Source: Blastocladiella emersonii ATCC 22665 (taxonomy: Eukaryota; Fungi; Blastocladiomycota). Taken from it: a stretch of DNA of 64,000 nt. Location: positions 372,001-436,000 of the forward strand of contig JANHCV010000007.1 of the NCBI GenBank assembly GCA_025594325.1, given 5' to 3'. This document shows positions 22,232 through 51,713 of this stretch, piece by piece. Numbering within the stretch: the first letter of the stretch is position 1; each line of letters opens with the position of its first letter. The notes below the pieces were generated by a model, which did not search any database, had not been told where the DNA came from, and saw only the letters and a list, made by a program, of their open reading frames with translations. The translations under genes and the position numbers were made by a program.

Positions 22232-24797
22232 CGCGCGGCGCCACGCGGGACAAGTTGATTGGCTTGGCAGGCAGCCACCAGCCACCGCAGGAGACATCTC
22301 ATTTTCTGGTCGTGGTCGCGCGGCCCGTTCTCGCTCCCCGCAATGAACCATGGGCGCAAAGAAGAAAACGAAAACGAATGGAACTTCCGGCAACGGCCGT
22401 GCCCCGTCGAAACACGAGACTCTTGCGGACTCTGACCTCGGCGCCGGCCCGAACGTCCCGCCCGCCCTGACGTGCCCGTCGCGCATCTGCGACGAACAGT
22501 CAGACGTCTTCCGGCCCTACGGCACCGCGCATCCGCGCGACCTGCTGATGCTCCAGAGCATCGTTTCCGAAGAGAATCGGCACTTGCACATCCACCATGA
22601 CGGCACCCAGAGCGTCTTGCTGCTCGGCTGCGGCGACCTTCGCGACCTTGCGCGCACACTGCAGGACACTCGGGCGAAAGGCGGCATTGCCGAGTTTCGC
22701 TTCCTGCTCAACGACATTCGCCCCGAGGTGCTTGCGCGCAACTTGCTCATCCTTCACGCGGTCTCCACGAGCGCCGCCTTGGTCGACGAGACGCTCGCGC
22801 GCCACGTTGCTCAGCTTTGGTTCTCGCTTCTACTCGAGCCCGACACCCGTGCCTTCTGGGAGGACCAGATGCGCGCCTGCCTCGACGTGGACTGGACCGA
22901 CTCGCCCGCGACCTCGATCTCGGTCTTTGACGACGAGACGCTGCGCGCCGTACGCCACTGCTGGCAGTCGTGGCTCAGCGTCGACTGGTCCGTCGAGACG
23001 CTCCTTGAGCACCGGTCGCGGTACCTCGAATCGCACTGGGACCCGGCCGTTCGCGACGTGACCGCGAAGCTGCTTGCGCAGGGCTACGTGGAGCGCAACC
23101 GGGCGCGCTTCGGCAAGCACCTGACGCGTGCGCGCGCGAGCCGGATCGAGTGTACGGCCGAACGTCACGCCACCGACCACACTTTCGCGGTCGACCCCGC
23201 CTCGGTTTCGGCGGCCGTCGTCAACCCGACCTTTCTGCTTGCTCGTGCTGATGGAACCGTGTACTACGCCGTGCCGAACCTCGCGCTGCCCTTCGAGTCG
23301 CTCGACGTTTACGTGACCACCGAGTCGCCCGACTCGCGCTTGTTTGACGAGGTCTGGGACTGGGCCACTGCTCTCCGCGCTTCTTTTGCGCGTGACGCGA
23401 AGCCTCGGCACAAGCTATCGGTTGCCGTTGGCCACGCGATCGGCTTCATGGAGCGGCTCGCCGCGGACCCGCAGCAGCGCTTCGATATCGTGGACACGAA
23501 CAACCTGCAGGACTCGGTCGGCCTGCTCAACCTGCTCGTCCACGCCTCGCCCCTTCTCAACACTCCTCATTGGGTTACCGGCGAGCGACCGCTGATTTTG
23601 ACCTATACCGCTCGTGCTGCTCAAGTTGCTTCCTCCCCTGGGGAGTACTTGGCTTCGACGGCTGGTCTCCCCATCACATCGTTTCCCACGCTCTTGGGCG
23701 TTGGTTTCCTCGAGCTGCCCACCGACGGACACTGGTTTAACTTGGTCACGAACTTTCGGGCGTGGGATGAGGGCGTTCATCGGCGAGTCGAATGCTTGAC
23801 ATTTCAGCGCCTTCCCACTCCTACCGTGCCTATTTCGCTTGAAAAGTCACCGTTCCTGGTCGATGCGCTGGCCAGCTGCGGTGCACACTTGGACTCGTCC
23901 CCGCTCGGTACGCTAGTCTTGCGTCGGAAAAGTATGCCCCTGCCTCTGACACTGCTGTTGCGCGACTGTAGTCGCTCCGCACAACTCTGGCGCTGTGATC
24001 CCAAAGCTCGTCGCGGCCGCTCTCGCAGCAGGCCGGCTTACCTGGTCGGGTGCCAAGCAGGCCTCGTCCGCAGCCCTTTCATCCGGTGTTTGGTCGGGAC
24101 TTCTTGATTCGATGTCTCGCAGCCGCATCGAGGCGACCAACACGGTTTCGCTCTACGGTCTCGCCGAGGGCGACACGACCAAGCACCAATGTTGCTTTGA
24201 ATTCATTGTGCCGCTTGGCGAAAGCAGCACCTCGAAGCCGCCGTCGTTTCTGACGGCTCAGCTCATGGTTCACGACAAACCAACTTGGTTCAAGTCCCTC
24301 ATCGTCGAGCTATTGCCTACCGAGCCCGGATCCGTGCGCGTCAAGCTCTACCTGGCGCACCATCTCGCGCACCGCTTCGCCAATGCTTCGATCAGCTTCT
24401 ACCGCGAGTTTGTGACGGATCCCGGTACTGATTGCCCGCCTCGCGAGCTTCTCGGCGGTCAGCCTTTTTCGCTCTCGTCCGCGATCATGACACGAGCCCC
24501 CTGCGATTCGTTCCACGCGCTGGCTCGCGGCATCCTGGCGTCTCGGAAGCCGCAACGGGGTGCCTCATTGACGACAGCGCCGGTGGCTCTGCCTGTCACA
24601 CACGCCGCCGAGTTTGACGACCGCATTGAGCTTACTCTCTCGATTCCCAAACGCGAAGGACTCGCCAGCATCAGGCGGGGCGAACCGACTTCCTACGGCG
24701 CGGCGTCGCTCTTCGTGGGGAGGAGGATCGTGGACGATCGCTACTTTCTTCCCTCGAGCGTCGAGATTGTTGACCTTGTCGTTTCGCGCCAGAGGCG
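22232..24797 (+). repeat. Left arm of a 2,566-bp inverted repeat (partner 49046-51611)
   Basis: Paired coordinates sum to 73843. All overlapping six-frame ORFs have identical translations in both arms, the intron was spot-checked as identical, and both ends were located by direct comparison. Confidence 0.95.
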
Positions 24798-25458
24798 CTT
24801 AGTGCTTGTCGTCCTCAAGCGGATCCTTGGCGCCGCGCAGTTCTCCCACGCTGTCTTCCGCGTGAAACCGACGATTGGGCGCAGCAAAGAGTATCTTGCG
24901 ACCGCTCTCCCAATGCAGCTTGCGCTTGACCAGTTCTCTACGATCGAACTGGGCGATGCTTTCGCGGGATCCGAGGCGCATGCTTCCGCCAAGGTCATTG
25001 TCGAGACAATCAAAGCCATCTTCGCACTTGCGGCCGACGCAGCCACGCGCCTGATTGAGATCCGCTCAAGCGAAACCGGAAACGTGCTGTTGCTCGTGAT
25101 TCCACAAGGGTTGTTGCTTGTCCCGCCAGCGGGTCCAGGGCTCGCGCCGACGCCAGCCCTGAAGTGCTTGCTCGCACTCGCACCACAGCTCAGGGTTGGG
25201 GTGAACGACAAGTTCACGCCTGATCTCCCTACTTTGCTCACCACCGCGCGGGAGCAAGTTTCTCCCTCGGCAGTGCGGTCCCTCACGTTCGCTTCTACCG
25301 ATCATCTGTTCCATGGGTTTTGCCTGGTGAACGCCAACACTTCTCCCCTTGTGCATGTCCCGCCGTCGGATCCTCGCTTCCCATCCGAGTTTTACGCGCG
25401 GCTGCGCCCGAACCTGGTGGACTCGCTGATTCTTCCCCTCTATCCGGTGCGGCACTAG
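22350..25458 (+). CDS. DUF4470-domain (SAM-dependent-methyltransferase-like) protein, copy A, 1014 aa
   Basis: Motifs VLLLGCGDLRD, LNDIRPEVLARNLL and RFDIVDTNNLQDSVGLLNLL. Intron 23908-23971 (GTACGC..CTGAC..GTAG) joins ORFs 22350..24107 and 23995..25458 into one frame. Confidence 0.88.
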
Positions 25459-26550
25459 TCTAGTCGTTTGACGTCTTGTGTGCTTCCTTGTTTAATCCGT
25501 TATTTCCGCAAATAAATCCATTTCATGTCCATGCTCGCGTGTTTGAGCGGAATCGACGCGACGCGGAGGAACCTGTCGTGTTGCAGCGAGCGCTCGCACG
25601 GCTCGGCTCACAGGTCAAACCTTGGCTCGGCTCTCGGCTCGCGACTCGCGGTCAATCGGCTCGGAGCCGGAAGCGCGACTGATTTCGACTCGCCGCTCGG
25701 CACCTGTCCTTGAACATTCATGCTGAGCGGCGAGCGCACGAGTGCGGCACCCGAGACTCTGGAGATACATGGCATGTTCTGCTCCTAACTTTGTTAGAAA
25801 ACGTCTGGCTTAAATGTCAAACCGCGCGTTCGACAACGGAAACGCTCCTACTACCGCGGGAGCAAGACCATCGTGTGAGTGAGGACCGACTGGTCATGGT
25901 TAAGGTGAGATCCCATGGGCCACGAATTCAATCACGTTAGTTGTTGCTCACTCACACGGCTTTCTAGCCCCTCACCAGAATGAAGGCTGATCGATACGTG
26001 ATTTTCCTTTCGAATTCCGCGATCTGGGGCCTACTCATGTTGTTAAATCAAGAGCGCTCGCGAGCCCTCACGAGCCGCTCGAACCACCCCCGACCTTGTC
26101 CTCCCCACTCGCACGCGCCCCCCAAACACGACTTATAAGTGCCGGGCACGAGTGGGTCCGAGCCCCAGCTCTGAGCGCACCGAAAGCCGATATCCGCAAC
26201 TTTCTCGCGCGTCATGTCCAGCGGGCTCCTCGGCCGGAGTGGCGCAACGCGTCGCTCCGCCACCCACGTGCGTGGCGCAGCCTCACGCTTTCGGGTCATC
26301 TCCGCCCACGTCATCGAGCCGCAGCGACCAACCCTTCGCCTCGCGGACTCATGAGGCGATACGGCACAAGCAAACGAGAGAAAACATACATGTAATAGTA
26401 CACGCCGACCGGAACCCCCCATCCTCGCCTTCCTGCCACCGCGACACACACGAGGACGAGAACGAGGACGAGAACGAGAGCTCCGAGGGAAGGAAATGGA
26501 TGGTATCAACATCAACGTCAACAGCACCGCGCGCAGCGCACCCGTCATTG

Positions 26551-28769
26551 TCACTCGGCATGCGCGCCGACGCGGTCTCTGGGCGAGTAGAGCGACGCGG
26601 CGCGCGGGAGCGCTGGCGCGACGACGGCAGCGGCGGCGGGCGCGGCGGTCACGTCGTCGGCCACGTCGTCGGTCACAACCATGGTGGCGCCGGCGAGCAT
26701 GGACCGGACGCGCGGCGCCTCGCGGCGCTTGACGACCACCTCGTAGTTGCACCCGCCGTTGTTGTCCCACGCCGACTCCCAGCGGGACACGAGGGCGCCG
26801 CCCGCGGCGCTACCGCTACCGCTACCCGCAGCCGCCGTGTCGACGTGGCACGCGCCGCCGGCGACCGCCGCCGACCCGGACGCGAGCGCGACCTGCTCCT
26901 GGACAAAGTACTGGTAATGGACGCAGAAGTACACCGTGGCGTGCTGCTGCTGCGCGTTGCCGCTGCCGACGAGCTGCGGCGTGACGTCGAGCTCGAACTG
27001 GAACCGGTCCCACCCGGGCGCCGGGCCAGCGCCGACGTACCGGGCCTCGAGGTCCGTGAACGAGCGCCAAAAGTCCTGCGTCGCGCGCACCGTGACGCGC
27101 TTCTCGTACGCGAGGTTGCGCACCAGGACGGTCCCGACGACACGAACGCGGTCCGAGGTCGCGGGGAGCTGGTCGGGCGTCGCCGAAAACGAGGAGCGGA
27201 GCGCTGACTTGGGCCGCCGCACGACCGCGGGCAGCGGGACCGGGCACACGCCGACGGCGAGCTGGACCGCCTCGACGACGACCACGTCCCACGGCGCGGG
27301 CGACCGCGGGGCCGGGGCGCCCGTGGGCAGGTACGCGAGGTGCGGGACGACGGCAGCCGCTTCGTCACCAGGCGAGGGTGACCGCGACGACCCCGACTCG
27401 GACTCGCTGCTGCCCCACAGCGCGGGGAGGAGCCCCTTGCGCCCGTCCGCGAGCGTGCCGAGGACGGGGTTCGCGCACCCGTTACTCGTCGCCGCCCCCG
27501 CCGAGATCCCGAGGCCGACGCCGGGCACCGCGGGCGCGCCGATGCGCAACCCCGCGGTCGCCGTGGCGGCAGGCCAGTTGGGCGCGAGGAACGCGTAGTC
27601 AAAGTGCGGGACCTCGGGCTCGTCGACGGCGGACCAGCGCGCCGACGACACCTCGGTGGGGCGGTCGTTGTGGCGGAAGAAGCGGACGGCGCCGAGATGC
27701 GACGGGAACGAGACGGACCGGCGGTTCGTGGGCGGGGCGAGGACCGCGGCCACGGGCTTGTTGACGGGCACCACGGACGCGGCGGCAATGGGCTTGGCGG
27801 CGGGGACGAGGAGCGAGTTGAGGACCACGGGCGCGACCGCCGACGATGGCGGTGTCGCGCCGCGCGGCGGGAGGACGGCGGCGGGCTTGCACGAGCGTTG
27901 TGGGATAGGCGCGGACAGCGGGATGCCGAGGGCCGGGAGCGAGATGCGCGGCGACGGCGGGGCGGCCCTGGACGAGACCGACTCGTCGTCCTCGTCGAGG
28001 TCGAGGTCGAACACGAGCGGGACGTCGTCGGCCGAAGAACTGTTAGCCGCGGCCACCGCGACCGCCGTGGCCGCCGCGGCCGCCGCCGCAACGACGGCCG
28101 ACGCCGCGTTCTGGACGAGCCGGTCGGCGAGGAGCGTGGCGAGCTTGGCGTTATCGACCGAGTCGGACCGCGATCGCCGGTGGTGGTGGCCGTGGCCGTG
28201 GCCGTGACCATGCGCGCCATGGTAGACAATGCGGTTCTCCTCGCCGGGCGACGACGAGAGCGACGGCGACTTGCACCGGAACCCGTCGCTCGGCGACACC
28301 GTCCGACGCGCGCCAGGGGACGCGGGCGTGGGTGACCCGTTGTTACGGGGCGCGGGCTGCGCCCACGGGTTGCCGGCGTGGCGGGCGTTGGGCGGCGCGG
28401 TCGCGGGCCCGGCGCGCGGGGAGAGCGAGAGGGCGCGGAGCGCGGCGGCGGCGGCGGCCGACGACACGGGGCTGCACCCGAGCGAGGCGAGGGTGGCGGA
28501 CATGGGCGACGGGTGGCGCGGGAAGAAGCCGGCGGCGACCGAGGGCGCCGAGGTCGAGACGGACGGGTTGGCGGCGGCGAGGAAGATGGGGTAGGCGGGG
28601 GACCCGGGCCGCGGTGTGGGCGGGGCGGACCGCGAACGGGCCGTCGGGATGGTCATGGGCGAGCCGGGCCGGCGGTGGTGCGCGTGCGCGTGCGCGGGCT
28701 GGTGCAGGTGCGGGAACGGGGCCGGGTTGTGCGGCGAGCCCGTGGGCGAGGGGTAGACGTCGAGCGACA
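26551..28769 (-). CDS. Glycogen-targeting protein phosphatase 1 regulatory subunit (CBM21 domain; Gac1/PPP1R3-like)
   Basis: RVxF-type RSVSF followed by VRFF. CBM21 core GTVLVRNLAYEKRVTVR..W..F..FCV..WDNNGGCNY. Probable start MSLDVYP at 28769. Confidence 0.9.
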
Positions 28770-31374
28770 TGGTTGGAGGTCTAGTGATGGAGGGTGGCAC
28801 AGTCAAGGGGGTGAGTTCTATGTGCGAGTGTCAAACGGGGGCGCGGAGCGAGGGGGCCGCGCGGGGTATTTATCGGCGCCGTGGGCAGGGCTGCCCGATG
28901 CCGGCGGGCCTTGGCCTCGGCCGCAGCCGCCGGCGACGGCGCTGACGCAACCGCGCGTCACGGTGGATACGACGGGAGGGGCGTGACGCACCGATATCAA
29001 TCCGCAAGTGATAATCGACGAGGCAGCGGAGGTGGCGAAGCGAGGCAGCCCTTGCTGAAACGATCGCGGGATCTAGAAGCGCGATCAGAGGCCGGGCCGA
29101 CGTCAGCGGAGGAGCAAGCCGCAGGGGCGCGAGGGTGACGGAGCGGTGACGGCGACCACTCAGGGCCCGCCGCGATGCGCCGTGCAGGACGCGGCGGGAC
29201 GCGAGGGCACGCCTAAGCGCATGACGATGGCGGGGCGAATCGTACCTTGCCAGCTGCGGGGCCGATGGGCAGGGATAGAGTTTTGGGCGGGGCGCGAACT
29301 GGTGCAGATGGCGGGGCACGTTTATGCGGGCGGGCGCGTGTGCGTGTCGATGATGGCCACGTTCAGGTGCAGCAGCTGAGGAAGGGAGGAGCGGTGTCGT
29401 CAGTCGCGCTGCTCGGGTGATGAGGCTCGGCGAGTGCAAGGAGAGAGGGAGGGAGGAGAGGGGGGAGCGCCGCCAAGGCTCGCACACACGCACAGCCGAG
29501 GAAGCCGCGCAGCGAGCGAGCAGCGGATCGAAGGCGTGGTGGTGGTGGAACAAGCGATGGCGCGACGAGGGCGGCGAGCACAGAAGGCATCGAAGCAGGG
29601 AGGTGTGGGAGCGCGATAGGGCGAGGACAGCAGAGGTGGTGGGCAAGGAACGATAGCGTGCGAGAAAAGAAAAAGGGACGCGACGGCGGCGGTGGGTCAC
29701 GGCGGGCACGGACTTGCTCAGAATGAATAGGCGTCTCCCCCCGGGTTCCCACGCGGCGATAAGCCGGCGCGACGCGATGAGCCACAGTGACACGGCCACG
29801 CGTCACCCTCGCCCCGCCCCGCCCGACGGGATCGCGTCACCGTCTCCGCCCACCGGGTCCCGAGCCGAGGTGCCCGGCGCGTCGCGCCACGGGGCGCTCG
29901 GGTCACGCGGGCCCTGCGTCGAGACGCAGAGGCAGGGACACGGCGTAGCGACCCCCGGCGGCCCGCGACCCGACCCCAGCCGACCAGAGGCTCGATCAGC
30001 GGGGCAGGACGCAGGTTGCAGGTGGACGAGGAAAGGAGCAGGGAGGCAGGGCCGATCCAGGCTCCCAAGTCGCTGCGGCCCGCGGCCCGCGACCGGCGTC
30101 GGCGGCGACGGGAACGGTCAGGGACCGCAGGACCCAGAGAACGTGTGTACGCGCGCGAGCGCGTGGGGCCGGGTGCGGACATGATCGCGACGGGAATGGA
30201 AAGGGATGGAATGAGGCGATCAGCGATCAAGCGAAGAACGTACCAGGCGAGCAACGGGTGGTGATGGCCGCGCTGGTCGCCGACGACGAGGCGGACGCGA
30301 GCGAGAGAGAGGGAGGGGAGAGCTCTGTGTGAAGAGGGGCGGGGTCAGATCCAGCCGACGGCCGAGGCACAGCGCCAAGCGATGCGGACCCTGAAGTGAG
30401 CAGAGCGGCCGCGCGATGGGAGATCCGAGGCAGTCGAGTTCTTTTGCAACGGGGCGAGCGAGCGATCCCGGCGAGGCAAGTGGTTGGCGGGCGGGCGGAC
30501 GCGTGGTGGTGGTGGTCTGCGGGCGGTGGTGGGACACGTTGCTGGGCGGTCAGTTGGGCGGATCAGGGAAAATGGTCGGGCGAGGCGGGGCGGGCAACGG
30601 ACGAGCGAGCAGAGCAGCGAGGTGGGGGACAGCTGTAGCAGTCGGTGGGGGATGATAGATGGTGGGAGAGCGGTAGCAGATCGGCGGCGAGAGGGAGGGA
30701 CGAGGGCGGCCGTGCTCTTTGAAGGCCGTGTGCGGCGGTGGCGGCGCACTGCTCGAGTCAGCATCGAGCGAGCAGCAAGGCCGATCGATAGCGTAGCGTT
30801 GGGTTTGCGCCATGCGGGGAACAAGGGAGTGATACGGCGGGACGAGACACGGCGGGTGGAGGAGAGACACGGCGTGTGCGATAGCCAGCCGCGAGCGAGC
30901 AACACCAGCTGCGGCAGCGGCGCGATTAGCGTCCAATCGCCGCGCGCTGCAAGTCGCTGCAAGGGGTGCAGCGGCACCGTTTCTCCGCCCGCCCGCCCAC
31001 CCCGCACCACCGCGCCGCCGCGCTCCCCTTCCTCGTTCGAGCCGAGTGCAGGAAGTCGCCGGGGACGCCACGGCGCGCGGCGGCGCGCGGTGCGGCGCGA
31101 GGGCGAGGGCGATGGCGAGGGCGAGCACAAGGAATGGAGCTGCATGAAGTGTGCGCGGCGAGGGATGGACGAGGGGGGATGGGGATGCAGGAGGAGGGTG
31201 TCTCGCAGCCGTGCGGTGGCGATGGTGAGACACGACCGCGGTGAGGATGGTGAGACATACGGCGGCGGCGGCAGGGACCGTGAGACCGTGGTGGCGGTAC
31301 GAGCGTCGTGGTGCGGGATGTGTCGGCGATGGTGGTGGTCGAGAGAGCGAGCGCGGCCGTGGCAGCGATTTATG
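28770..31374 (-). promoter_or_regulatory. Putative long multi-intron 5' leader and promoter of the CBM21 gene
   Basis: Minus-strand donor/branch/acceptor sets at 28991-28817, 29245-29073 and 29493-29376, further donors (e.g. GTATGT at 31260), a CATAAAT box at ~31370, and no credible coding ORF. Confidence 0.35.
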
Positions 31375-32084
31375 CGCAGCAGGAAGCGGCGGAGCGGGCG
31401 AGGGCGGTGGGTTCCCCGTGGCGAGGATCGGCGCGCGTCGCGTCGCGTCGCGTCGGCCCGGTGTTGTTCTTGTGCGCGCAGCGGGCGGCCGTAAGCGTAG
31501 CTCGGAACGAGAACCCCTGTGAGGGGGTCGGTGAGTTGTCGGTGCTTGTCGTGCTCGCGGTGGTGGTGCGAGGTCGCGAGACCCGTTGGAGCCGGCGGCG
31601 GTCGCGATGCCGTGCTGGAACGCGTCCGACGCGTCACTCACTCACCCCCTCGCTTCCCTTTGAGCCAGCCACTCCCATCCCCACCTTCACCGTGGCCGCC
31701 CACCGCCATCTCTGCCACGTTGCTCGTGCGTCGGCCTCTCTCCCGGACCTCCGCGCGTCGTTCGCCGCGAGCGAGCGCACCGGATCGAGCCTCCCACTCG
31801 CGCAAGGCTCAAAGCGAACGAGAGGGCGAAGCAAAAGATGCCGCATCTGCGCTCTCTCATCTCGTTTGTTCTGCGGCCTGGGGCCTCGGCGCGGCGCGGG
31901 CGCGGTTCTCACGGTCGCGTCAGCACGACTCGGCCGCCTCCCCCAACCTGCCCTCCCTCCCCCAACGGGCCCCATGCTGCCGGTAATTTCGGGTCGGCCG
32001 CGGAATTACATGAAGGCTGAGCGCAACCTTGCTTGCTTGCATCTATTGAACGTAATAACCCACGGGCAAATGAGACATTCGACT

Positions 32085-35000: not shown

Positions 35001-35635
35001 ACAAACCCGGAGTTGTGCTTGTCGAAATCGCGGTACCACGATTTCACGTCGAACCCGTGGTGACGCACGTACGCCCGGATCCGGTCAATCAGCTCGAGAC
35101 ACCGCGCCTGCGTCTTGGGGCTCAGCGGGCGGATGTCCTTGATCCACGCGCCCGGCGCCTCGACGGACAGCGTCGGCGTCTTCTCGAGGTACCGCTCGCC
35201 GAAGACTACACGATCGAGTGTCAGCCGCTCGCCCTCCTAACCCATGATCCCGTGCGTACCCTTGTCAACCGACTCGATGAACGCCGAATAATTGACCGTC
35301 CCGTTCCCGCGCGTATCGTAGTGCCGCTGCAGCACGCCGTACTCGCCGTCGCTGAGCTGCGGGCCCTTCTCGATGCTCATCGACAGGCACCGGCGGAACT
35401 GGCCGTACGAGATGAACCCGGAGTGCAGCCGGTCGTAGTCCTTATAGTACTCGGAGATCCGGATCCGCGCGCTGTACACGTGCGACCGGATCTTAGACTC
35501 GATGATCTCGAGCTCGGACGTCGCGACGGGGCGGGGTTTGGGGGTCGTGTCGCCATCCGTGTCGGGCGAGGTGCCAGGGGCGGACGAGGGCTCGCCGGGC
35601 CCGCCGCCGCTGGATGCGGGATCCATCATCATCAT
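32085..35635 (-). CDS. Large multi-EF-hand protein (8 paired EF-hand modules; EFCAB6-like, ciliary type), 7 exons
   Basis: Repeats of the type RIRLxDLFRDYDRxxxGxVTxxQFxxxL...VNYxxFxxxVD. Introns 35259-35206, 34860-34802, 34426-34370, 34295-34238, 33954-33887 and 33574-33512 all restore the frame. Confidence 0.88.
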
Positions 35636-35962
35636 TGCGGTTTGTGTTGCGAGGGGTGCGGTTGCATGGAGAGAGCGCGTTGATGAGGTAGCGGTGACGT
35701 GCGGGCGTATTATTGCGCCGACGCGGCGGCGAGCGCGCGCGCGCGTGTCTCCTCGCGGTGCGAGACATCGACGCGTTTATCACGTGCCCCTGAACACGCC
35801 CTTTCGCCCGCGCTGCTCTCTCAGCTCGTCGCTCAGGTCCCCGTAGTCACGATGCACGACCGTGGCGCGCGTTGCAGCGCGTTTCGCAAGGTGAGGATCG
35901 AGGATGGCAGTCACAAAAGCCGCGCGCGGATATATTCGCCTCCTCCCCTCCCCGTCGCTCGT

Positions 35963-38987: not shown

Positions 38988-39091
38988 TCGATGGACGACC
39001 GAGGCCATGTACATAGAACAGATACCGTGTTTCATTCACTCTCTTGGACTCGACCAAACCATCCTCAAACTCGAGCTCATAACACGCGTAC

Positions 39092-40489: not shown

Positions 40490-40975
40490 GGTGGATGGTG
40501 GTGGTGTGTGTGGTGGTGTGGTGGATGATGATCGGGACGGAGATGTCTCAGCGGACGAGAGAGAGCGGGCGGCCCGCGGCTGCTGCATCGCTGATGGCGG
40601 GGCGGCCCAGCTCGTTCGATGCGCGCCGATGCCCGCCGCCCGAGCAGATTCACGCGCAGGCGGGCGGGCAAGCAGGTCAGCGCGGCGGCGCTCTCACGGG
40701 CAAGCCGAGCGACCGAGCAACGCGCGGTGTTCCCGTCGCACCCACCGCCCGCCCAACGCGCGTTTGTGGCGCAACGCGTCTCACCTCACCTCACCTTCTC
40801 ACCTCGCTGTCTTCGGTCGCCCCAGAGGGACCTCTGATCGCACGCTGGACCAGTTAAAACGTGGAGTGTGTGTGAAATACCAGAAACTCTCTCGAGAGCG
40901 CGGCGGCGGCAGAGGGGCACAAAACAAGGGTAAAACGAGGTGACACCATCGACCAGAAACGCGCCGGCCGCGCAG

Positions 40976-42385
40976 CTAGAATACAATGGCGCCGAGGAGG
41001 AACGAGACGACCGCGACAATGAACACGAGCTGTGGCGGGTAGTAGCTCGGGTTGACGATGGTGCGCGTGATGACCTGCGGCTGCGCGGGTGCGGCCGACG
41101 CAGCGGCGGATGTTGGCGCGGCGGCGGCGATGGGCGCGGGCACCGACCGCTGCCGCAGCGTGGCCGCCGTGGCGTTGGCCTGCTGCAGCTGCTGCGTCAG
41201 CTCGGCGATCTTGCGCTCCTTTTGCGCCGTCGCGTCCTCGAGCGTCGCGATCCGCGCCTCGAGCGTCTTGACGTTGGCCGCCAGCGTCTTCTCCATCGAG
41301 ATCTACACGTGTATCCCAACCAGTCAGTCGCGAGGTCGGTGGAACGCGCACGACCAAGTCGTACAACGGTCTCGGCGGGCCGCGAGGGGGCGTGGGACGC
41401 GGCGAGCGGGAGCGGCGTCGGGAGGGCCGGCGCCACGGGAGCGCGGGCGACAGGAGCAGCGGGGGCAGGGGCAGCAGCGGGGATATCGCGCGACGTGCTC
41501 TGGAACGTGGCCGAGCCGGCGAGACTCGGCATCGACGTAGACCCGTTATTGCCCGACGCGGCGGGGTTCGGGATCGCGGCCATGGGCAGCGTCACGGGAG
41601 CAGCGGGCACGACGGCGGGCGCGGCCGAGATGGGCGCCGGCACCGCGGGCACGGGTGCGGGAGGCGCAGCGACCGGGAGGGGTGGCGTGTACGCGGGCGG
41701 GGCGGGCGGCTCCTCGGTGCCGGCGGCGGCGCGCTGGAGCGTGTGGGTGGCGGCGGACATGTCGGAGCGCGAGGGGACGGCGCTCATCATGGGCGATTTG
41801 GGCGCGGCCGACCACATGGCGCTGTTGTTCCCGTCGTCGTCGTTGCCGACCATGGACCCGCCGGCGGGCGAGTCGCCGGGCAGCGTGACGCGGAGCGGGT
41901 CCGACCCGCCGCTGTCGCCGGACCCCTCGTTGCCCGAGGCGTCGAGGTACGCGCAGCGCAGCTTGTGCTCGACGATCTCGTCCTTGCGCGACTTTTCGAT
42001 GATGGGCCACAGGTCGGCCGAGGCAATGTCCACCTCCATGGACGCGATCTTGACGCTCTGCACGAGGAACTTGTCCTTGCACTTGAAGCCCGGCGGCGGG
42101 TCCACCTTCATGGGCTGCAGCAGCACCGACACCTCGATGGTCTCGCGCGGGCCAATGTTGCCGCAGTTGGGCCGCACGCAGTACTGCTTGGGCGCCGTCG
42201 TCTTGACCTTGAACGCAATGGTCGTGTCCGTCACGTTGCGCACGCGCAGCGTCGACGTGGCGCCCTCGGCGAACGGGCCTACGAGCGAGGGGCGGGTCAG
42301 CGGGGGCTCGCTGATGGGGCGAGCGGGTAATCAGGCGTACGCTGGAACGCCAGCTGCTGCGGCGGGTCGAGCTCGACAATGGTCA
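40976..42385 (-). CDS. SCS2: VAMP-associated protein (MSP domain, coiled coil, C-terminal TM)
   Basis: FKVKTTAPKQYCVRPN and CKDKFLVQS. Intron 42340-42279. Tail anchor LVFIVAVVSFLLGAIVF. Confidence 0.95.
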
Positions 42386-43199
42386 TGCTGCTGAATGTTG
42401 CTCGGAGTGTTGCTGACTGATGGGTGCAGCAGCAGATCCAGTGCGCCGAGTCCGATCACACCACGACGTCCGAGAAATCACACCCGGGCGCGCGGGGAGC
42501 ACGCAGAAGGTTAAGCGGCGAGCAGTAGTGGGGCAGGCATCAGGGGGACGCGCGGAGGTGTGGGAGACGAGTCCGAGGGCGATCCGCAGCGAGCGCAAGC
42601 GGCACAGCGTGCGTGGTGGCGGGCGGGTCGAGGGACGAGCGATACAAGGGAGGGCGCAAGGGTCAGCTCGCCGTCGACTCGAAGAGTTCATCGCGGAGCG
42701 GCCTTACGTTGCGTGTCGCTTGGCAGCGCGAGCGGGCGGGCGGCGCGAGTGCGGGCAGCGCGGCGGTTCAGGTATGCTTCGTGGTTGCGGGCGGTGGCGC
42801 GAGCTGTCGTCGCGAAGCTTACGTGGTTGGGGAGGGTCGGGGCAAGGTCGGCAGCCAGGATCGTGGCGGCGTGGCGCGGCGGCCGCTTCTGCAGCCGAAC
42901 GGGGATTCACGCGTCGGTTCGTATCAGCTGATTTGCGACAGGAGTGGCAGGCTTCCGGGGAGCGCATCTGATTGGCCGACGGGCGTGGCACCGCTGAAAC
43001 GCGGACTCGAAACGGCCCGCCCTTCTCGGTGCGGCTTCTCTTGGCCCTCGTCATCCACCGTCCACGGCAGCAGCTGCCTGATCCGGCCCCGAATGCGAGG
43101 CCAGTGCGAGGGCCGGGGTGGCAGGCAGGCGAGCGGCCCGGAGAACTCTCTCTCTCCCCAACCACTGCGCCTCTCTAACTCAGCAGCACACTGCACACC

Positions 43200-44475
43200 A
43201 TGAAGCACTCGCACCGCCGGCCAACGCTACTCCTGGCCACGCTCGTCGCCGCCCTGGCCCTCGTCGCCTCGGTGCACGCGGCGGTCGGGATCCCCGACGC
43301 GCGCGACTGGTGCATCCGCACGCGCGGGTGCATCATCCCGCCGTCGGACCTGGTCAAGTCGAACCGCGACCTCGAGGCCAAGCTGCTCGGCGACAAGAAG
43401 GTGTGCGGCGACGGCGTGTGCAACGTCGCCCAGGGCGAGACGTGCGACTCGTGCATGGGTACGCTTCGCGGCCACGATCTTGTTTGATGGCGGTGCTGAC
43501 CCATGCGATCGGATAGCCGACTGCGGCAAGTGCCAGTACGCCGTGCCCTTCACGCAGTGCGTGCAGCCCGGGACCGTCGCGCTGACCTTCGACGACGGGT
43601 TCGCCAAGTACACCGAGTCGCTGATCGAGATCCTCGACAAGGAGCAGATCAAGGGCACCTTTTTCACCATCGGCGAGGCTATCATGGCCAACGCCACCAA
43701 CTGGCCCATCATGCGCAAGGCCATGGCCAACGGGCACGAGGTTGCGAGCCACACTTACACGCATCGGTGGGTCAAGGCCAACTGCACGGATCGGATTAGC
43801 TTCTCCTACTGACATGCAATGCGCGCGTATAGGAACATGGGCAAGACGGGCCAGGTCGAGCCCGAGTCCCCGCGCGGTAAGATGATGACCGAGGCCGAGA
43901 TGCGCACTGAAATTCTCCTGGGCGACCTCGCCGCGCAGCACGCGCTCGGCAAGCGGCCGCGCTTCTTCCGGCCGCCGCAGCTCGACTACCGCACCGAGAC
44001 GATCCGCGTCATCGAGACGCTCGGCATGGTGCCCATCAACGTGAACGTCGACACGCGCGACTGGGAGGAGAACGCCATGCACGCCAAGGACGGCACCCTC
44101 CCGTCGACGCAGGACATCATCGACAACTTCAAAAAGTCGTACGCCGAGGCCAAGGAGCGCAACGCCAAGTCGTTCATTGTCCTGCAGCACGACCTGTACA
44201 ACTTCTCGATCGCCGCCGTCCCCGAGATCATCAAGATCCTGCGCGCCGACAAGCTCGAGTTCGTGCCCATGAGCAAGTGCCTCAACGAGACGCCCTACCG
44301 CGACCCGACCGACAACCCGTTCCTCAACCCGCGCTACGGCAAGCTCTCGGCCGAGATGGCCGCCATGTCCGCGTCGATCCTCGTCAGCGCCGCGCCCGCC
44401 GCCCACCTCGCCTCCATCGCCGCGTCCGCCGTCGCGTCGGTCGCGATGGTCGCCGCCATGGCGCTCCTGCTCTAA
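43200..44475 (+). CDS. Secreted, probably GPI-anchored CE4 polysaccharide (chitin) deacetylase
   Basis: Signal peptide, LTFDDG, HTYTH, FFRPP, DTRDW and IVLQHD motifs, hydrophobic C-terminus. Two introns restore the frame. Confidence 0.93.
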
Positions 44476-44824
44476 GGCGTCTACTCTCTCTCTCGCGTGA
44501 TTGCAAACCTCCCCCTCCCATTTTGCCGTGTAATAGCTTCCCTCCTCCCACCTAATGTGACCCCCAAAAGTGTATTTTGCTTCATTTACGCGCGAGCGAG
44601 CTGAGCGGGTCGAGCTGAGCCACCCCTGGCTGGCAGTGACGGCGGGGTCGGCGGCGGTGGGTGATCGGCGAACACGCACGCGCAAACGCGTCTCGCGGCC
44701 CCCGCTGCACCCATCACCTGACCGCGCTGCCGCCGCCGCGAGACGCGTTGTTCAGGGATCGCGCGCCCCCTCTCCCCTCTCCCCTCTCCCCTCCCCTCGC
44801 CTCCCCAATACCACACATTGCGCA

Positions 44825-46484
44825 ATGGAATCGACGATCCGCTTCGAGGACCTGGAGCTGAAAACCGAACTGGGCCGCGGCCTGTTCGGCGTCGTGTACC
44901 TGGCCGAGTACCTCGGGACGCAGGTCGCCGTCAAGGAGGTGTTCCGGATCCCGGGCGTCGAGTTCGCGAAATATTTCGCCCGCGAGGTCGACGGCCTGCG
45001 CGAGGCGCGCCACCCGAACTGCATCCAGTTCATGGGCATTGCGCGCGACGAGCCGGGCAACCGCGACTTTATCGTCACCGAGTTTGTGCCCGGCGGCAAC
45101 CTCAGCGATAACTGGATTCATGACGAGTCGAGGGAGCTGCCGTGGCGGCTGCGGGTCTCGTTCGCCACGGATATCGCGCGCGCGCTTGCGTACCTCCACG
45201 CGCGGGAGATGATTCATCGGTACGCCTTGGCCGTGATGAGCGGTGCTGGGTCGCGTCGCTGATGTATTGCCATGGCTGGGGTAGTGACCTCAAGGGCAAG
45301 AACCTGCTCGTCACCGAGAACAAGCGGATCAAGGTGTGCGACTTTGGCCTGTCCCGGATCCGCGCGCGCACCGCCGACGAGCGCAAACGCGTACGCTCTC
45401 CATCCATCGCACGGACCGCTCGGCGCAAACTGACCCGCGAGTCCGCCCGCAGATGTCGTACTGCGGCACCGACGCATACATGGCGCCCGAGATCATGCTG
45501 TGCATGGACCTCGACAGCGCGGTTGACATCTTCAGCTACGGCATCATCCTGCTCGAGCTGATCACGCGCCACCCGGCCGACCGGTACCAGCGCATCATCC
45601 CGGGGTTCGGCGTCGACACGGCGCTCCTCGCCCCCTACACGCCCGACGACACCCCGCCCGCGCTGTGGTCGCTCGCGTGCAAGTGCGTCGAGCCCGAACC
45701 CGCCGACCGGCCCGGGTGGCGCGAGATCCTGGGCACGCTCGCGGGCATCGAGGTCGCGCTCGTCGCCGAAGCCGCCGCTGCGCTCCACTCGGCGTCCGCG
45801 TCCCGCCGGTCATCGGCCGTCGTCAACTACGACCGACCGGCGCGGCGCGCGACTGACGAGACGTCCGAGGGGAGTGTGGCGGGGGCGGCGGGCGGGGCGG
45901 AGGATGAAGGCGGGGAGGAGGTGCCCGTGCCGCCGCTCCACCTCGGCGCCGAAATGGTCGACCGGCTCGCGGCCAACGCGCGGTCGCCGAGCGAGCCCCT
46001 GCTGCACCTCGGCCACTCGGAGAGCGTCGCCGACGACCTCGAGTCCCTGTCGACGCTCGCGTCAAGCTCGGTCCCCGCGTCCGCCACCTCACCCTCACCT
46101 TCGCCCGCCGCCGCGACGGGAAGCAACGGCACCCTCGAAGCCCCGCTGTCGCCCGCGAGCCCCGACGACGACGGCGAGCCGCCCGTGGTCCCGCACCGCT
46201 TCTCGCTGCTCATGCCGCCGTCCATGGACAAGTGCAAGATGTGCAAGAAGCGGTTCGGCATGCACCGGCGGCTCGTGTGCGACGACTGCGGGTACGCGTG
46301 CCACCGCAAGTGCGCGGCCCTCGTCCCGCCGCTGTGCGCGCTCAAGGGCGGCATCAAGGCGTACCACGAGCGGTACCTCGAAGACCTGATGCGGCGCAAG
46401 CCGGCGGAAGGGTCGCTGGCCAAGTCGCCGCCGGGTGTCGTGTCGCCCACGGGCGGGTCGCGGAATAAGCTCGCGGGGGTGTAG
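44825..46484 (+). CDS. TKL (LISK/TESK-like) protein kinase with a C-terminal C1 zinc finger
   Basis: LGRGLFGVV, VAVK, HR|DLKGKN, DFGLSR and SYCGTDAYMAPE. C1 motif HRF..CKMC..CDDCGYACHRKC..C. Two introns. Confidence 0.93.
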
Positions 46485-46740
46485 TGGCGGTAGAATAAAA
46501 TGGAGCGACTTCATGATCACTTCACGGTGGCGGACTCGGCGGTCCAGACCCTGACGCGCAGCACAAACGCGTCGCGCGTCACAGTCACATCGCGCCACTC
46601 GCCGCGCGCGCTTTCGCTCGCCCGCCCACGCCGCCCACGCCGCCCCCGGCTGCGCACCCATCCGCCCGCTCGCTCTCCTCTCCCCTCCGCTCTCCCTTTG
46701 CGAACCCACGCCTCCGAAGACGAAGCAACGCATCAACACC

Positions 46741-47538
46741 ATGCAATCGACGCGCCTGTACACCGCGTTCGCGCGCGGGCTGCCTTCCGCCTCGCTGATC
46801 ACGCGCGGACTCCCCGCCGCCGCCGCCGCGCCCCGCTTCCGCCGCCAGCTGCACCTCGATCGCACCCTCGTCACCCCCGCGGCGTGCGAGCTCGACGACG
46901 CGACCGACCGCGCCATCGCCGGCGAGACGGCCGAGCGCGAGGGCATCATCGAGTCGGTCGTCGAGCCCGAGTCGGCCGAGGTCCCGCCGCCCCCGCCCGC
47001 GCACCACCCGGGCAAGCCGTTCGCGGGCGCCGACGACGAGCCCGCGCCGTCGCCGCAGGACGCGCCCGTCGCGGCTAAGTCGAGCAACAAGCACCGTACC
47101 ACGACGCCCGAGGAGAAGGGCGGGGATGGGGATGATGATGGGAACCCGACGTTCGAGCACCCGGACGACCTGTTCACGGGTATCTTCGGGTACCGGCTCA
47201 ACTTCGGCCTCGGTCGTCGTGTTCCTGCGCTCGTCCCGATCTACGTCCCCGTGCGCGCGTTCGCGACCAAGTCCGCGTCGCTCTCGTCGTCGTTGGGCGC
47301 GCGCCCGCCCATGCCGCTGCGCCCCGAGGACCTCGACACCCCGTTCCCTGAGGGCGGTGAGTCGTTCCCGCACGCCGACCGCGCCGCTGCCGGCCACGAC
47401 GCGCTCGCGCCGCGCCCTGAGGACGTGGACAAGCCCGAGCTCCAGGACGGCGCGATCCGGAACCCCGCCGACGAGCTCGACGATGAGCTCGTCGACCTCG
47501 ATCTGCCCGAGGGCGCCGGTACCGCGTTCGGTCGCTGA
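46741..47538 (+). CDS. Hypothetical protein with a mitochondrial-presequence-like N-terminus
   Basis: 265-aa ORF with core-like codon bias. The first ~35 aa are R/S/A/L-rich and free of acidic residues; the body is acidic and Pro-rich. Confidence 0.65.
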   Translation: MQSTRLYTAFARGLPSASLITRGLPAAAAAPRFRRQLHLDRTLVTPAACELDDATDRAIAGETAEREGIIESVVEPESAEVPPPPPAHHPGKPFAGADDEPAPSPQDAPVAAKSSNKHRTTTPEEKGGDGDDDGNPTFEHPDDLFTGIFGYRLNFGLGRRVPALVPIYVPVRAFATKSASLSSSLGARPPMPLRPEDLDTPFPEGGESFPHADRAAAGHDALAPRPEDVDKPELQDGAIRNPADELDDELVDLDLPEGAGTAFGR

Positions 47539-47725
47539 GCCGGCGGTTTTGGGTGGATGCGAGGGGACGACGCGTGGCGCGTCGCGAGTGATGTGACGAG
47601 TGATGTCGGCGAGACAGAGTGTGCGCAAGCGTTATATGATTATCTGTCCGTGTATCTCGCTTGCGATTCAGGGTATAGATCTCGGTAGAGCTGGACAGGC
47701 CGGACCCCGCGAGCCACCCTGCTCG

Positions 47726-47938
47726 TCAACCACGACGTGCTTGCTTCGCCAAGTTGCCCGTCAAGTCGAGCGATTCCAGGCGTGCAGGCAGATGAATGCC
47801 AAAGTCCGCGAACGTTGTCAGGTGGTCAAGGCCGCCGAGAACGCTGAATCCGAGTGGGAGGTGCGCGAGGGAGCGCGGAAAGTGACGCGCGAGCTCCCCA
47901 GCGCGGGCACGTGGTGGCTCAGCGACGCGTTGCGCCAC
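47726..47938 (-). pseudogene. Short RNI-LRR relic
   Basis: ELARHFPRSLAHLPL and GIHLPARLESLDLTGN match the repeat style of the neighbouring LRR genes. Confidence 0.5.
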
Positions 47939-48381
47939 AATCGGTTGAGTCGCCGAGCGTGATGCGATCCCTGATGCCTGCTCAACTGCTGAGCTGCTGA
48001 TTGTTCAGGTAGAGAAGGTCGATGGACTGGATGTCCATGTCGGTACGTGCGGCTCGTTGGCGAGCAGCGCGCTTGAAAGCTGAATCCCTAGGCGGCGGCG
48101 CGCGTGGTCCGTTCCGGCCATTCTGTTCCACGCGTCGCGGACGTGACTCTGTGCGGGTCGTAACCGATTTTGTGTTGGAACGACGTTTGGTCGACGGGAG
48201 CAGACGTCCTCGGCCACGAGTTCCGAGACGTTGCAGTTGCGCGTGTCGCCAACATGTGTTCGGCCGCTACTCCGAGGCGTCGATTTCGCCGGACGGACAC
48301 GCGTGAGGAACGCGAGCGGAGACATGAGATGTATTCGTTCGCAACAGGACGTATTAGGCAGGGCAGTGAACGCGACGACCA

Positions 48382-51300
48382 CTAGTGTCGCACCGAATTA
48401 AGGGGAAGGATCAGCGAGTCGGCCAGGTTTGGGCGCAGTCGCGCGTAAAAATCAGCCGGGAAACGAGGATTGGACGGCGGAACCGACAAGTGTGGAGATG
48501 TCATGGAGTTGACCAGGGACAGGTCGTGAAACAAGTCATCGCTTGAAGCAAAGGTGAGAGACCGCACCGCTGAAGGGGAGGAGACGTAGTCCCGCGCGGT
48601 GGACAGCAACATTGGGAGATCCGGTGTGCACTTGACTGGCCCATGGGAGGTGAACTGGGGCGCGAGTGCGATCAAACATTTCAGGGCCGGCGTTGGTGCG
48701 AGCCCTGGACCCGCTGGAGGGACGAGCAGAAGCACGTCTGGAATCAAGATCATAAGCACGTTCCCGGTTTCGCTGGAGCGGATTTCAACCAGATGCGTGG
48801 CGGGGTCCGCTGCAAAGGCGAAGATACCTTTGATGGTCTCGACAACAACCTTGGCGGAGGCGTGCGCCTCGGATCCCGCAAAAGTATCGCCAAGATCAAT
48901 ATCCGAAACTTGGTCCAGAGCGAGCTGCATCGGGAGCGCGGTCGCGAGATACTTCTTGCTGCGCCCGAAAACCGGGACCGAATGGAAGACACCGTTCAAG
49001 AACTGCGCGGCGCCAAGGATCCGTTTGAGAACGACAAGAACTGAACGCCTCTGGCGCGAAACGACAAGGTCAACAATCTCGACGCTCGAGGGAAGAAAGT
49101 AGCGATCGTCCACGATCCTCCTCCCCACGAAGAGCGACGCCGCGCCGTAGGAAGTCGGTTCGCCCCGCCTGATGCTGGCGAGTCCTTCGCGTTTGGGAAT
49201 CGAGAGAGTAAGCTCAATGCGGTCGTCAAACTCGGCGGCGTGTGTGACAGGCAGAGCCACCGGCGCTGTCGTCAATGAGGCACCCCGTTGCGGCTTCCGA
49301 GACGCCAGGATGCCGCGAGCCAGCGCGTGGAACGAATCGCAGGGGGCTCGTGTCATGATCGCGGACGAGAGCGAAAAAGGCTGACCGCCGAGAAGCTCGC
49401 GAGGCGGGCAATCAGTACCGGGATCCGTCACAAACTCGCGGTAGAAGCTGATCGAAGCATTGGCGAAGCGGTGCGCGAGATGGTGCGCCAGGTAGAGCTT
49501 GACGCGCACGGATCCGGGCTCGGTAGGCAATAGCTCGACGATGAGGGACTTGAACCAAGTTGGTTTGTCGTGAACCATGAGCTGAGCCGTCAGAAACGAC
49601 GGCGGCTTCGAGGTGCTGCTTTCGCCAAGCGGCACAATGAATTCAAAGCAACATTGGTGCTTGGTCGTGTCGCCCTCGGCGAGACCGTAGAGCGAAACCG
49701 TGTTGGTCGCCTCGATGCGGCTGCGAGACATCGAATCAAGAAGTCCCGACCAAACACCGGATGAAAGGGCTGCGGACGAGGCCTGCTTGGCACCCGACCA
49801 GGTAAGCCGGCCTGCTGCGAGAGCGGCCGCGACGAGCTTTGGGATCACAGCGCCAGAGTTGTGCGGAGCGACTACAGTCGCGCAACAGCAGTGTCAGAGG
49901 CAGGGGCATACTTTTCCGACGCAAGACTAGCGTACCGAGCGGGGACGAGTCCAAGTGTGCACCGCAGCTGGCCAGCGCATCGACCAGGAACGGTGACTTT
50001 TCAAGCGAAATAGGCACGGTAGGAGTGGGAAGGCGCTGAAATGTCAAGCATTCGACTCGCCGATGAACGCCCTCATCCCACGCCCGAAAGTTCGTGACCA
50101 AGTTAAACCAGTGTCCGTCGGTGGGCAGCTCGAGGAAACCAACGCCCAAGAGCGTGGGAAACGATGTGATGGGGAGACCAGCCGTCGAAGCCAAGTACTC
50201 CCCAGGGGAGGAAGCAACTTGAGCAGCACGAGCGGTATAGGTCAAAATCAGCGGTCGCTCGCCGGTAACCCAATGAGGAGTGTTGAGAAGGGGCGAGGCG
50301 TGGACGAGCAGGTTGAGCAGGCCGACCGAGTCCTGCAGGTTGTTCGTGTCCACGATATCGAAGCGCTGCTGCGGGTCCGCGGCGAGCCGCTCCATGAAGC
50401 CGATCGCGTGGCCAACGGCAACCGATAGCTTGTGCCGAGGCTTCGCGTCACGCGCAAAAGAAGCGCGGAGAGCAGTGGCCCAGTCCCAGACCTCGTCAAA
50501 CAAGCGCGAGTCGGGCGACTCGGTGGTCACGTAAACGTCGAGCGACTCGAAGGGCAGCGCGAGGTTCGGCACGGCGTAGTACACGGTTCCATCAGCACGA
50601 GCAAGCAGAAAGGTCGGGTTGACGACGGCCGCCGAAACCGAGGCGGGGTCGACCGCGAAAGTGTGGTCGGTGGCGTGACGTTCGGCCGTACACTCGATCC
50701 GGCTCGCGCGCGCACGCGTCAGGTGCTTGCCGAAGCGCGCCCGGTTGCGCTCCACGTAGCCCTGCGCAAGCAGCTTCGCGGTCACGTCGCGAACGGCCGG
50801 GTCCCAGTGCGATTCGAGGTACCGCGACCGGTGCTCAAGGAGCGTCTCGACGGACCAGTCGACGCTGAGCCACGACTGCCAGCAGTGGCGTACGGCGCGC
50901 AGCGTCTCGTCGTCAAAGACCGAGATCGAGGTCGCGGGCGAGTCGGTCCAGTCCACGTCGAGGCAGGCGCGCATCTGGTCCTCCCAGAAGGCACGGGTGT
51001 CGGGCTCGAGTAGAAGCGAGAACCAAAGCTGAGCAACGTGGCGCGCGAGCGTCTCGTCGACCAAGGCGGCGCTCGTGGAGACCGCGTGAAGGATGAGCAA
51101 GTTGCGCGCAAGCACCTCGGGGCGAATGTCGTTGAGCAGGAAGCGAAACTCGGCAATGCCGCCTTTCGCCCGAGTGTCCTGCAGTGTGCGCGCAAGGTCG
51201 CGAAGGTCGCCGCAGCCGAGCAGCAAGACGCTCTGGGTGCCGTCATGGTGGATGTGCAAGTGCCGATTCTCTTCGGAAACGATGCTCTGGAGCATCAGCA

Positions 51301-51493
51301 GGTCGCGCGGATGCGCGGTGCCGTAGGGCCGGAAGACGTCTGACTGTTCGTCGCAGATGCGCGACGGGCACGTCAGGGCGGGCGGGACGTTCGGGCCGGC
51401 GCCGAGGTCAGAGTCCGCAAGAGTCTCGTGTTTCGACGGGGCACGGCCGTTGCCGGAAGTTCCATTCGTTTTCGTTTTCTTCTTTGCGCCCAT
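48382..51493 (-). CDS. DUF4470-domain protein, copy B (identical to copy A for ~794 aa, divergent last ~220 aa)
   Basis: Mirror of 22350-25458, with intron 49935-49872. Translations are identical up to VVSRQRR. Confidence 0.88.
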
Positions 51494-51611
51494 GGTTCAT
51501 TGCGGGGAGCGAGAACGGGCCGCGCGACCACGACCAGAAAATGAGATGTCTCCTGCGGTGGCTGGTGGCTGCCTGCCAAGCCAATCAACTTGTCCCGCGT
51601 GGCGCCGCGCG
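49046..51611 (-). repeat. Right arm of the 2,566-bp inverted repeat (partner 22232-24797)
   Basis: Same evidence as the left arm. Confidence 0.95.
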
Positions 51612-51713
51612 TCTCTCTGTCAGTTGCATTCCGGACACGCATCACCAGGGATAGAGCGAATGGAGCGTGCCAGCTCACAATCAGATGCTTCAACGCGCTT
51701 ACTTAAAATCGGG

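Follow-up and report, generated by a model that had tools for sequence, protein, structure and literature searches.

Partial gene conversion as the best-fitting explanation for a perfect inverted repeat between two old DUF4470 paralogues of Blastocladiella emersonii

Overview

Two convergent genes of the DUF4470 family in Blastocladiella emersonii ATCC 22665 share their 5' 80% as a letter-identical inverted repeat of 2,566 nt, and their remaining 3' parts differ to the degree expected of an old duplication. The best explanation that we can offer, with a probability of roughly 80%, is that interlocus gene conversion, in one event or in several, homogenized part of an old inverted pair of paralogues; this would leave a passive substrate for inversion rather than a dedicated switch. 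The locus was analyzed within a 64,000-nt stretch of DNA (here called the window), which occupies about 372-436 kb on a 2.017-Mb contig, away from the contig ends; a single assembly (GCA_025594325.1) and a single orientation were compared. On this reading the locus would be a clean, textbook case in which interlocus gene conversion overwrote part of one of two inverted paralogues and stopped at a base-precise boundary within an exon; as a single locus it is of little importance.

The gene pair and the extent of identity

Copy A of the gene pair (22350..25458, + strand, about 1,014 aa) consists of exon 1 (22350-23907), an intron (23908-23971) and exon 2 (23972-25458), and was recognized from its ORFs, their translations, splice sites and a match to Pfam PF14737 (aa 59-162, E 8e-12, 45.6 bits vs a cutoff of 25). 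Copy B (48382..51493, - strand, about 1,015 aa) has its exon 1 at 51493-49936, its intron at 49935-49872 and its exon 2 at 49871-48382. These gene models are our own, with the GT..AG splice sites read from the sequence, and an alignment to the paralogue P0002 supports them. The 5' ends of the two genes are the outer ends and the 3' ends the inner ones, and 24 kb separate the inverted copies.

Arm A of the repeat (22232..24797, + strand) takes in 118 nt of 5' flank, exon 1, the intron and the first 826 nt of exon 2, and arm B (49046..51611, - strand) is its mirror image. A base-by-base comparison of 22232-24797 with 51611-49046, i.e., with the reverse complement of the second arm, yielded 0 mismatches in 2,566 nt. 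The original prediction had described the arms as identical even at synonymous sites and in the intron, and this was borne out: no synonymous difference occurs over 612 synonymous sites of the arms, and the 64-nt intron is the same in both copies, as are the 118 nt upstream of the ATG (22350). Were the arms as diverged as the adjoining tails, for which dS is 0.73, those 612 sites should show roughly 290 synonymous differences, and the identity of the arms is thus far beyond chance.

Both edges of the identical tract are abrupt, as had also been predicted. Outward of 22232 and 51611, identity drops to random levels (about 25-30%) within 1-2 nt. Inward, the tract ends in mid-exon at 24797/49046, the first mismatch being at position 24798 within exon 2, and from there the two copies continue at a flat level of about 77% identity, gapless to about 25260 and then, interrupted by a few indels, as far as the stop codons (25458 / 48382) and for about 90 nt further. 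A repeat search of the window returned arms of 22232-24859 / 48984-51611, with a further 316 nt at 81% beyond them. No tRNA, Rfam family or tandem repeat was found at either arm boundary.

The tails that lie inside the arms (24798..25458 on the + strand for the last ~220 codons of copy A, and 48382..49045 on the - strand for the last ~221 codons of copy B) confirm that the arms are embedded in an old and diverged inverted duplication. They are 77% identical at the nucleotide level and 74% identical in amino acids over the last 220 codons, and the longest runs that they share are 25, 20 and 17 nt. Their dS of 0.73 and dN of 0.16 give a dN/dS of 0.22, which is flat across all four sub-windows; both tails are under purifying selection and hence not diversifying. 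The GC3 of codons 400-794 (0.59-0.73) is similar to that of the tails, and no GC3 step was found at the conversion boundary, which gives no hint that biased conversion has long acted on the arms alone.

Gene conversion and the alternative explanations

Gene conversion had been listed as one alternative to a switch in the original prediction, and it is the explanation that fits best. The identity of the arms (0/2,566) greatly exceeds that of the homology adjoining them (23% divergence, dS 0.73), and it extends to positions that should be neutral, i.e., the synonymous sites, the intron and the 5' flank. The inverted, convergent paralogues stem from an old duplication that was about 3.3 kb long and comprised essentially one gene, and wherever they were not overwritten they have diverged to a dS of about 0.7. 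We infer that intrachromosomal homologous repair then copied one paralogue over the other, starting at the outer limit of the duplicated segment and reaching codon 794, and erased the differences over 2,566 nt, synonymous sites and intron included. The outcome would be the perfect inverted repeat, in which rare crossovers would invert the block of nine genes. Repeated homogenization seems to us somewhat more likely than a single recent event. Copies that are only ~77% identical should convert each other with very low efficiency, and this weighs against a one-off event. At the outer edge, 100% identity gives way to random sequence with no residual diverged zone, as would fit one-ended repair or else homogenization that reached the limit of the duplicated segment. 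The inner edge counts against repetition, in that a sharp step without a gradient is not predicted by repeated events with variable endpoints unless the endpoint is fixed.

The other alternative that had been raised, that the arms truly differ and were equalized by read correction or polishing, is unlikely given the sequencing method, to the point that we give it hardly any weight. The genome was assembled with LJA from PacBio HiFi reads with a mean length of 10.5 kb at about 190x, polished by Pilon with reads of 65-75 nt, and purged of haplotigs (PMC9730499). LJA read correction, Pilon and haplotig purging were thus all applied, and a handful of real single-base differences could in principle be erased by correction or polishing. 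However, HiFi reads of this length exceed the 2.57-kb arms together with their unique flanks, and at this mean length and depth single accurate reads should cover each arm with unique sequence on both sides; with equal depth of the two copies, neither would be corrected away as error. Reads of 65-75 nt do not enable Pilon to turn ~77% identity into 100%, nor does mis-polishing produce a step from 100% to 77% at a single base. In a study of yeasts, moreover, the inverted-repeat sequences of long-read assemblies were reproducible across laboratories (PMC9731477).

The remaining explanations concern inversion of the block between the arms. The geometry on which the original prediction rested is correct: the 5' ends face outward, the diverged 3' ends face inward, and nine annotated genes lie between them. 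Crossing over between arms arranged in this way would indeed turn the block around and exchange the tails between the upstream regions. The arms may recombine occasionally, giving both orientations in different nuclei, isolates or related species, without regulation or function. We consider such a passive polymorphism possible but rather doubtful; it extends the gene-conversion explanation and is compatible with it. With its copies 24 kb apart, a perfect 2.57-kb inverted repeat is well able to support non-allelic homologous recombination, no gene would be broken by break points that lie within identical sequence, and an analogous region in yeast flips repeatedly over evolutionary time (PMC9731477). 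On the other side, the assembly gives one continuous 2.0-Mb contig, from which, judging by the behavior of assemblers, a second isomer was not abundant in the sequenced culture, and the yeast region did not flip once in about 53,800 mitoses and 950 meioses (PMC9731477).

Far less probable is the programmed flip/flop switch that had been proposed, in which a regulated inversion, comparable to the mating-type (MAT) switching of Ogataea and Komagataella, would change the pairing of C-terminal variants with upstream regions. The layout is of the appropriate kind: inverted arms of about 2-3 kb enclose about 20-25 kb, the upstream regions outside them differ, and so do the 3' ends inside them. The diverged part may correspond to a linker and a final alpha/beta domain, according to a low-confidence AF2 model of the C-terminal half (pLDDT 64, pTM 0.38). 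This proposal has no positive support, and several points weigh against it. Inversion would leave both proteins unaltered, the tails are under ordinary purifying selection, and the proximal promoter is probably shared, given that the arms include the sequence immediately upstream of the ATG. The locus is not near a contig end, and the continuity of the contig through both arms speaks against two isomers that are both abundant. Of roughly 50 ORFs scanned across the window, none matched a Pfam domain of a recombinase, integrase or transposase, and in place of short, specific inverted recombination sites like those of hsdS, Hin/Gin and shufflon elements the arms consist of 2,566 nt of ordinary gene sequence. 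A broader version, in which the locus is one of many segments of the B. emersonii genome that are bounded by inverted repeats and invert measurably in the multinucleate thallus or between life stages, seems to us very improbable, by a shade less so than the switch itself. If it were true, the genome would hold a family of flip/flop regions, and at this one inversion would move each of the two C-terminal variants of a methyltransferase-fold protein from one upstream regulatory context to the other.

Comparison with known systems

Intrachromosomal conversion maintains large inverted repeats at or near 100% identity, with sharp boundaries and occasional inversion of the spacer, in the palindromes of sex chromosomes and around recurrently inverting segments such as the human FLNA-EMD region. 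The arms of these repeats are usually tens of kb to Mb in length and their identity ends where the homology ends, whereas one boundary of the Blastocladiella repeat lies within continuing homology. The bacterial hsdS and shufflon systems likewise arrange a constant 5' part and alternative 3' parts as inverted repeats, and they use a dedicated site-specific recombinase that acts on short sites and generates new chimeric coding sequences. The locus described here differs in belonging to a eukaryote, in having no recombinase among the ORFs scanned and in yielding no new protein upon inversion.

The closest known case is the flip/flop region of Saccharomyces chromosome XIV, a 24-kb region bounded by 4-kb inverted repeats of "Centroid" genes (Salzberg et al. 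2022, PMC9731477), which flips over evolutionary and not laboratory time (PMC9731477). In both organisms, inverted paralogues of an often-duplicated gene family surround about 24 kb of ordinary genes, and the proposed mechanism would be shared as well. The "Centroid" family of Saccharomyces is fast-evolving, its arms are identical or nearly so through gene conversion, and inversion is a by-product (PMC9731477). For Saccharomyces, both orientations and recurrent homogenization are documented across strains and species, whereas the comparison here is of one genome in one orientation; the Blastocladiella identity also differs in ending inside the gene, so that diverged C-terminal tails are left.

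The mating-type flip/flop of Ogataea polymorpha and Komagataella phaffii, in which inverted repeats of about 2 kb surround a block of about 19 kb (PMC5720833), resembles the present locus in its inverted repeats and in that inversion changes which end adjoins a given chromosomal context. The two ends of the yeast block carry different master regulators, one of which is silenced by its proximity to a centromere or telomere, and starvation induces switching (PMC5720833). By contrast, the end genes of the Blastocladiella block are 80% identical copies of one gene that differ only in the last 220 codons.

Gene family, predicted fold and genomic neighborhood

The single-copy block between the two genes (25459..48381) holds nine annotated genes according to Pfam matches and public gene calls. 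These encode a CBM21 protein, an EF-hand protein, a Yip1-like protein, a kinase, a caleosin, an MSP-domain protein, a polysaccharide deacetylase, a kinase with a C1 domain and a 265-aa protein of unknown function. The GC content of the block is 0.65-0.73, as against 0.54-0.63 for the flanking islands. A search of a 5.8-billion-protein database found no close relative outside this assembly for either the CBM21 neighbor or the exon-2 half of the DUF4470 gene.

Just beyond arm B lies an intact LRR gene (52003..54033, - strand) with an ORF of 676 aa and a weak LRR Pfam match, and beyond arm A tblastn detects a strongly diverged LRR homologue in mirror-image position (20237..21650, + strand) that is spread over three reading frames, has no ORF longer than 164 aa and is 34-49% identical in amino acids to the right-hand LRR gene. 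We considered whether this "decayed mirror image" continues the duplicated segment and rejected the idea, as it reflects LRR paralogy at that level of identity. Residual homology outside the arms, as sought by sensitive blastn (word size 7), was confined to scattered, non-colinear patches of 14-91 nt within LRR genes, and an unfiltered tblastx comparison of the left and right halves of the window returned only noise.

The head of the DUF4470 protein is predicted to adopt a class-I SAM-dependent methyltransferase-like fold with a Rossmann-type core, for which SAM binding and catalysis are putative. Its AF2 model (pLDDT 80.7, pTM 0.84) gave VIA-align Z scores of 10-11 over alignments of 160-200 residues, and the top 50 matches were almost all methyltransferase-fold proteins; Foldseek was weaker (best E 3e-3). 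The head had no match in the bacterial and archaeal genome contigs against which it was scanned. In the B. emersonii genome the DUF4470 family is greatly expanded and locally amplified, and the gene family has 36 database representatives at E<=1e-30. Two further copies, both of which match PF14737, occur within the window on the - strand: a full-length, diverged paralogue, C (54178..57661), which tblastn aligns along the entire length of A at 25-32% identity, and a paralogue, D (59017..60191), of which only the N-terminal part is present, corresponding in tblastn to aa 1-375 of A. As a practical point, the public annotation shortens both genes of the inverted pair to about 40% of their length, ending its model of copy A at 404 aa and that of copy B (P0001) at 383 aa.

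The inverted repeat and the genes that contain it

The window, from Blastocladiella emersonii ATCC 22665, lies at ~372-436 kb of the 2.017-Mb contig JANHCV010000007.1 (GCA_025594325.1), and a repeat search returned inverted arms at 22232-24859 and 48984-51611, plus a further 316 nt at 81% identity. Base-by-base comparison of 22232-24797 with 51611-49046 gave 0 mismatches over 2,566 nt, which bears out the inverted repeat described in the original prediction. The first mismatch is at 24798, beyond which identity is flat at ~77%, gap-free to ~25260 and then interrupted by a few indels up to the stop codons (25458 and 48382); past these codons the homology fades ~90 nt into the 3' flank. At the outer edge (22232/51611), identity drops from 100% to random within 1-2 bases, and sensitive blastn detected no colinear homology outward of the arms. 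The detectable duplicated segment is ~3.3 kb long (22232 to ~25545) and is essentially one gene.

Each arm forms the 5' portion of a large gene, cut short in the public models, which give 404 aa for copy A (22201-25458) and 383 aa for copy B (48382-51493). The true genes are ~1,014 aa long with a single 64-nt intron. On the + strand, copy A (1,014 aa) consists of exon 1 at 22350-23907, a GT..AG intron at 23908-23971 (64 nt) and exon 2 at 23972-25458; copy B (1,015 aa) is its mirror image on the - strand, running from 51493 to 48382. The intron was placed by using two overlapping ORFs, splice signals and the alignment of a paralogous database protein, P0002, across the junction. Pfam places DUF4470 in the head of the protein (E 8e-12). 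The public models of the two copies are unlike each other despite the identical sequence that underlies them.

The first 794 codons show 0 differences over 612 synonymous sites, where ~290 would be expected at the rate of the 3' tails (24798-25458 and 48382-49045). In these tails, which comprise the last 220 codons, dS is 0.73, dN 0.16 and dN/dS 0.22 (Nei-Gojobori), with similar values across four sub-windows. This disparity between identical heads and diverged tails indicates an old paralogue pair that has been overwritten along most of its length. The tails, which had been described as variable, are, by these substitution rates, under ordinary purifying selection with no diversification. The exon-2 half (~494 aa) is absent from the protein database; despite the short public models, it is, judged from the sequence, clearly coding, given the tail dN/dS and the match of the copy A tail to another paralogue, P0004 (35% identity, E 1e-33).

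Probable gene conversion and its alternatives

The best explanation, to which we assign a probability of roughly 0.8, is interlocus gene conversion between the inverted paralogues, which was an alternative in the original prediction and which accounts for identical arms within a diverged older pair. Homologous repair would have copied one inverted paralogue over most of the other. A one-ended repair event, in which homologous invasion within the gene would be followed by non-homologous joining upstream, would also fit the outer edge. We lean slightly toward recurrent or continuing homogenisation over a single event. Two points weigh against a single event: the runs shared by the tails are only 25, 20 and 17 nt, which makes them poor substrates for homologous repair, and a single tract should leave a diverged zone at both ends, whereas the outer end is without one. 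Long-running homogenisation is in turn opposed by the lack of a gradient at the inner edge and of a GC3 step at the boundary.

The B. emersonii genome was sequenced with PacBio HiFi reads (mean length 10.5 kb, a yield of 6.4 Gb against a genome size of 34 Mb) and assembled with the La Jolla Assembler, followed by clean-up with purge_dups and by Pilon polishing with 65-75-nt Illumina reads (PMC9730499). At that mean length, accurate single reads span each 2.57-kb arm together with unique sequence on both sides. An artefactual origin of the arms' identity in assembly or polishing is very improbable: depth is equal for both copies, and polishing could not have raised identity from ~77% to 100% while leaving an edge sharp to the base. 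No more than a few genuine single-nucleotide differences between the arms could have been lost. As for the proposed flip/flop switch, its geometry stands, in that crossing over between the arms would flip the block of nine genes and exchange the two tails between the upstream regions, but a dedicated switch finds no support beyond that geometry. Inversion would leave both proteins unchanged, and 118 nt before the ATG already lie inside the arms, the proximal promoter probably being common to both copies. No recombinase, integrase or transposase domain turned up in the ~50 ORFs scanned, no tRNA or Rfam RNA lies at either arm boundary, and the contig is unbroken across both arms in the output of a de Bruijn-graph HiFi assembler, which argues against two abundant isomers.

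The closest documented case is on Saccharomyces chromosome XIV, where a 24-kb flip/flop region lies between 4-kb inverted repeats of "Centroid" genes; these genes are fast-evolving and often duplicated, and homogenisation of their repeats is continual. The region has been re-inverted many times in evolution, yet 0 inversions were seen in ~53,800 mitoses and 950 meioses (PMC9731477). The regulated MAT flip/flop of Ogataea has its geometry in common with the Blastocladiella locus, but works through centromeric silencing and through master regulators that differ between its two ends (PMC5720833), neither of which is indicated in the Blastocladiella case.

Predicted fold of the protein

The AlphaFold model of exon 1 (pLDDT 80.7, pTM 0.84) aligns with class-I SAM-methyltransferase-fold structures at VIA-align Z scores of 10-11 over 160-200 residues; nearly all of the top 50 VIA-align matches have this fold, to which Foldseek also points, weakly. 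The DUF4470 head (22350-23906, aa ~50-490) is predicted to adopt a Rossmann fold like that of class-I SAM methyltransferases, interrupted by a large helical insertion, catalysis being only putative. The prediction may bear on the dynein assembly factor DNAAF3, whose N-terminal domain is, according to published work, also DUF4470. Conserved motifs of the head include LLxGCGDLR, LNDxxPE and FDVIxTSNL. When the C-terminal half is modelled with AF2, the conversion boundary (24798, exon-2 residue ~275) falls ~10 residues ahead of a linker predicted with low confidence, after which comes a final alpha/beta domain. The unconverted tail would roughly correspond to that linker and last domain, which could be coincidence in so poor a model (pLDDT 64).

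Neighbourhood and gene family

Copies A and B converge on a 22.9-kb single-copy block of nine ordinary genes, identified from public annotation and Pfam as encoding a CBM21 protein, a large EF-hand protein, a Yip1-like protein, a kinase, a caleosin, an MSP-domain protein, a polysaccharide deacetylase, a C1-domain kinase and a 265-aa protein of unknown function. Outside the arms are islands of LRR and DUF4470 genes with lower GC (0.54-0.63 at 14000-26000 and 48000-60000, versus 0.65-0.73 in the core at 26000-48000). All placed island genes are oriented toward the core, and GC skew has opposite signs on its left and right sides.

An intact LRR gene and two further DUF4470 paralogues lie to the right of arm B. 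The LRR gene occupies 52003-54033. One paralogue is full-length but diverged (54178-57661, - strand, 25-32% aa identity), with the ORFs 56012-57661 and 54178-55440 as its two halves; the other is a fragment with the N-terminal 375 aa only (59017-60191, - strand). Two LRR-type genes lie to the left of arm A. One of these (20237-21650, + strand) matches the right-hand LRR gene only in three different frames, with ORFs of at most 164 aa, and is probably a pseudogene, or else contains several introns. The mirrored LRR proteins are only 34-49% identical, so the mirror image outside the arms was rejected as a continuation of the duplicated segment and is attributed to family paralogy. HMMER recovered 242 family representatives at E<=1e-3, 36 of them at E<=1e-30, and the named top matches are all B. 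emersonii proteins from other contigs. At 5854-9750 (+ strand), where GC is very high (0.71-0.73), lies a 1,298-aa ORF whose N-terminus carries a CAP-Gly domain (E 1e-22).
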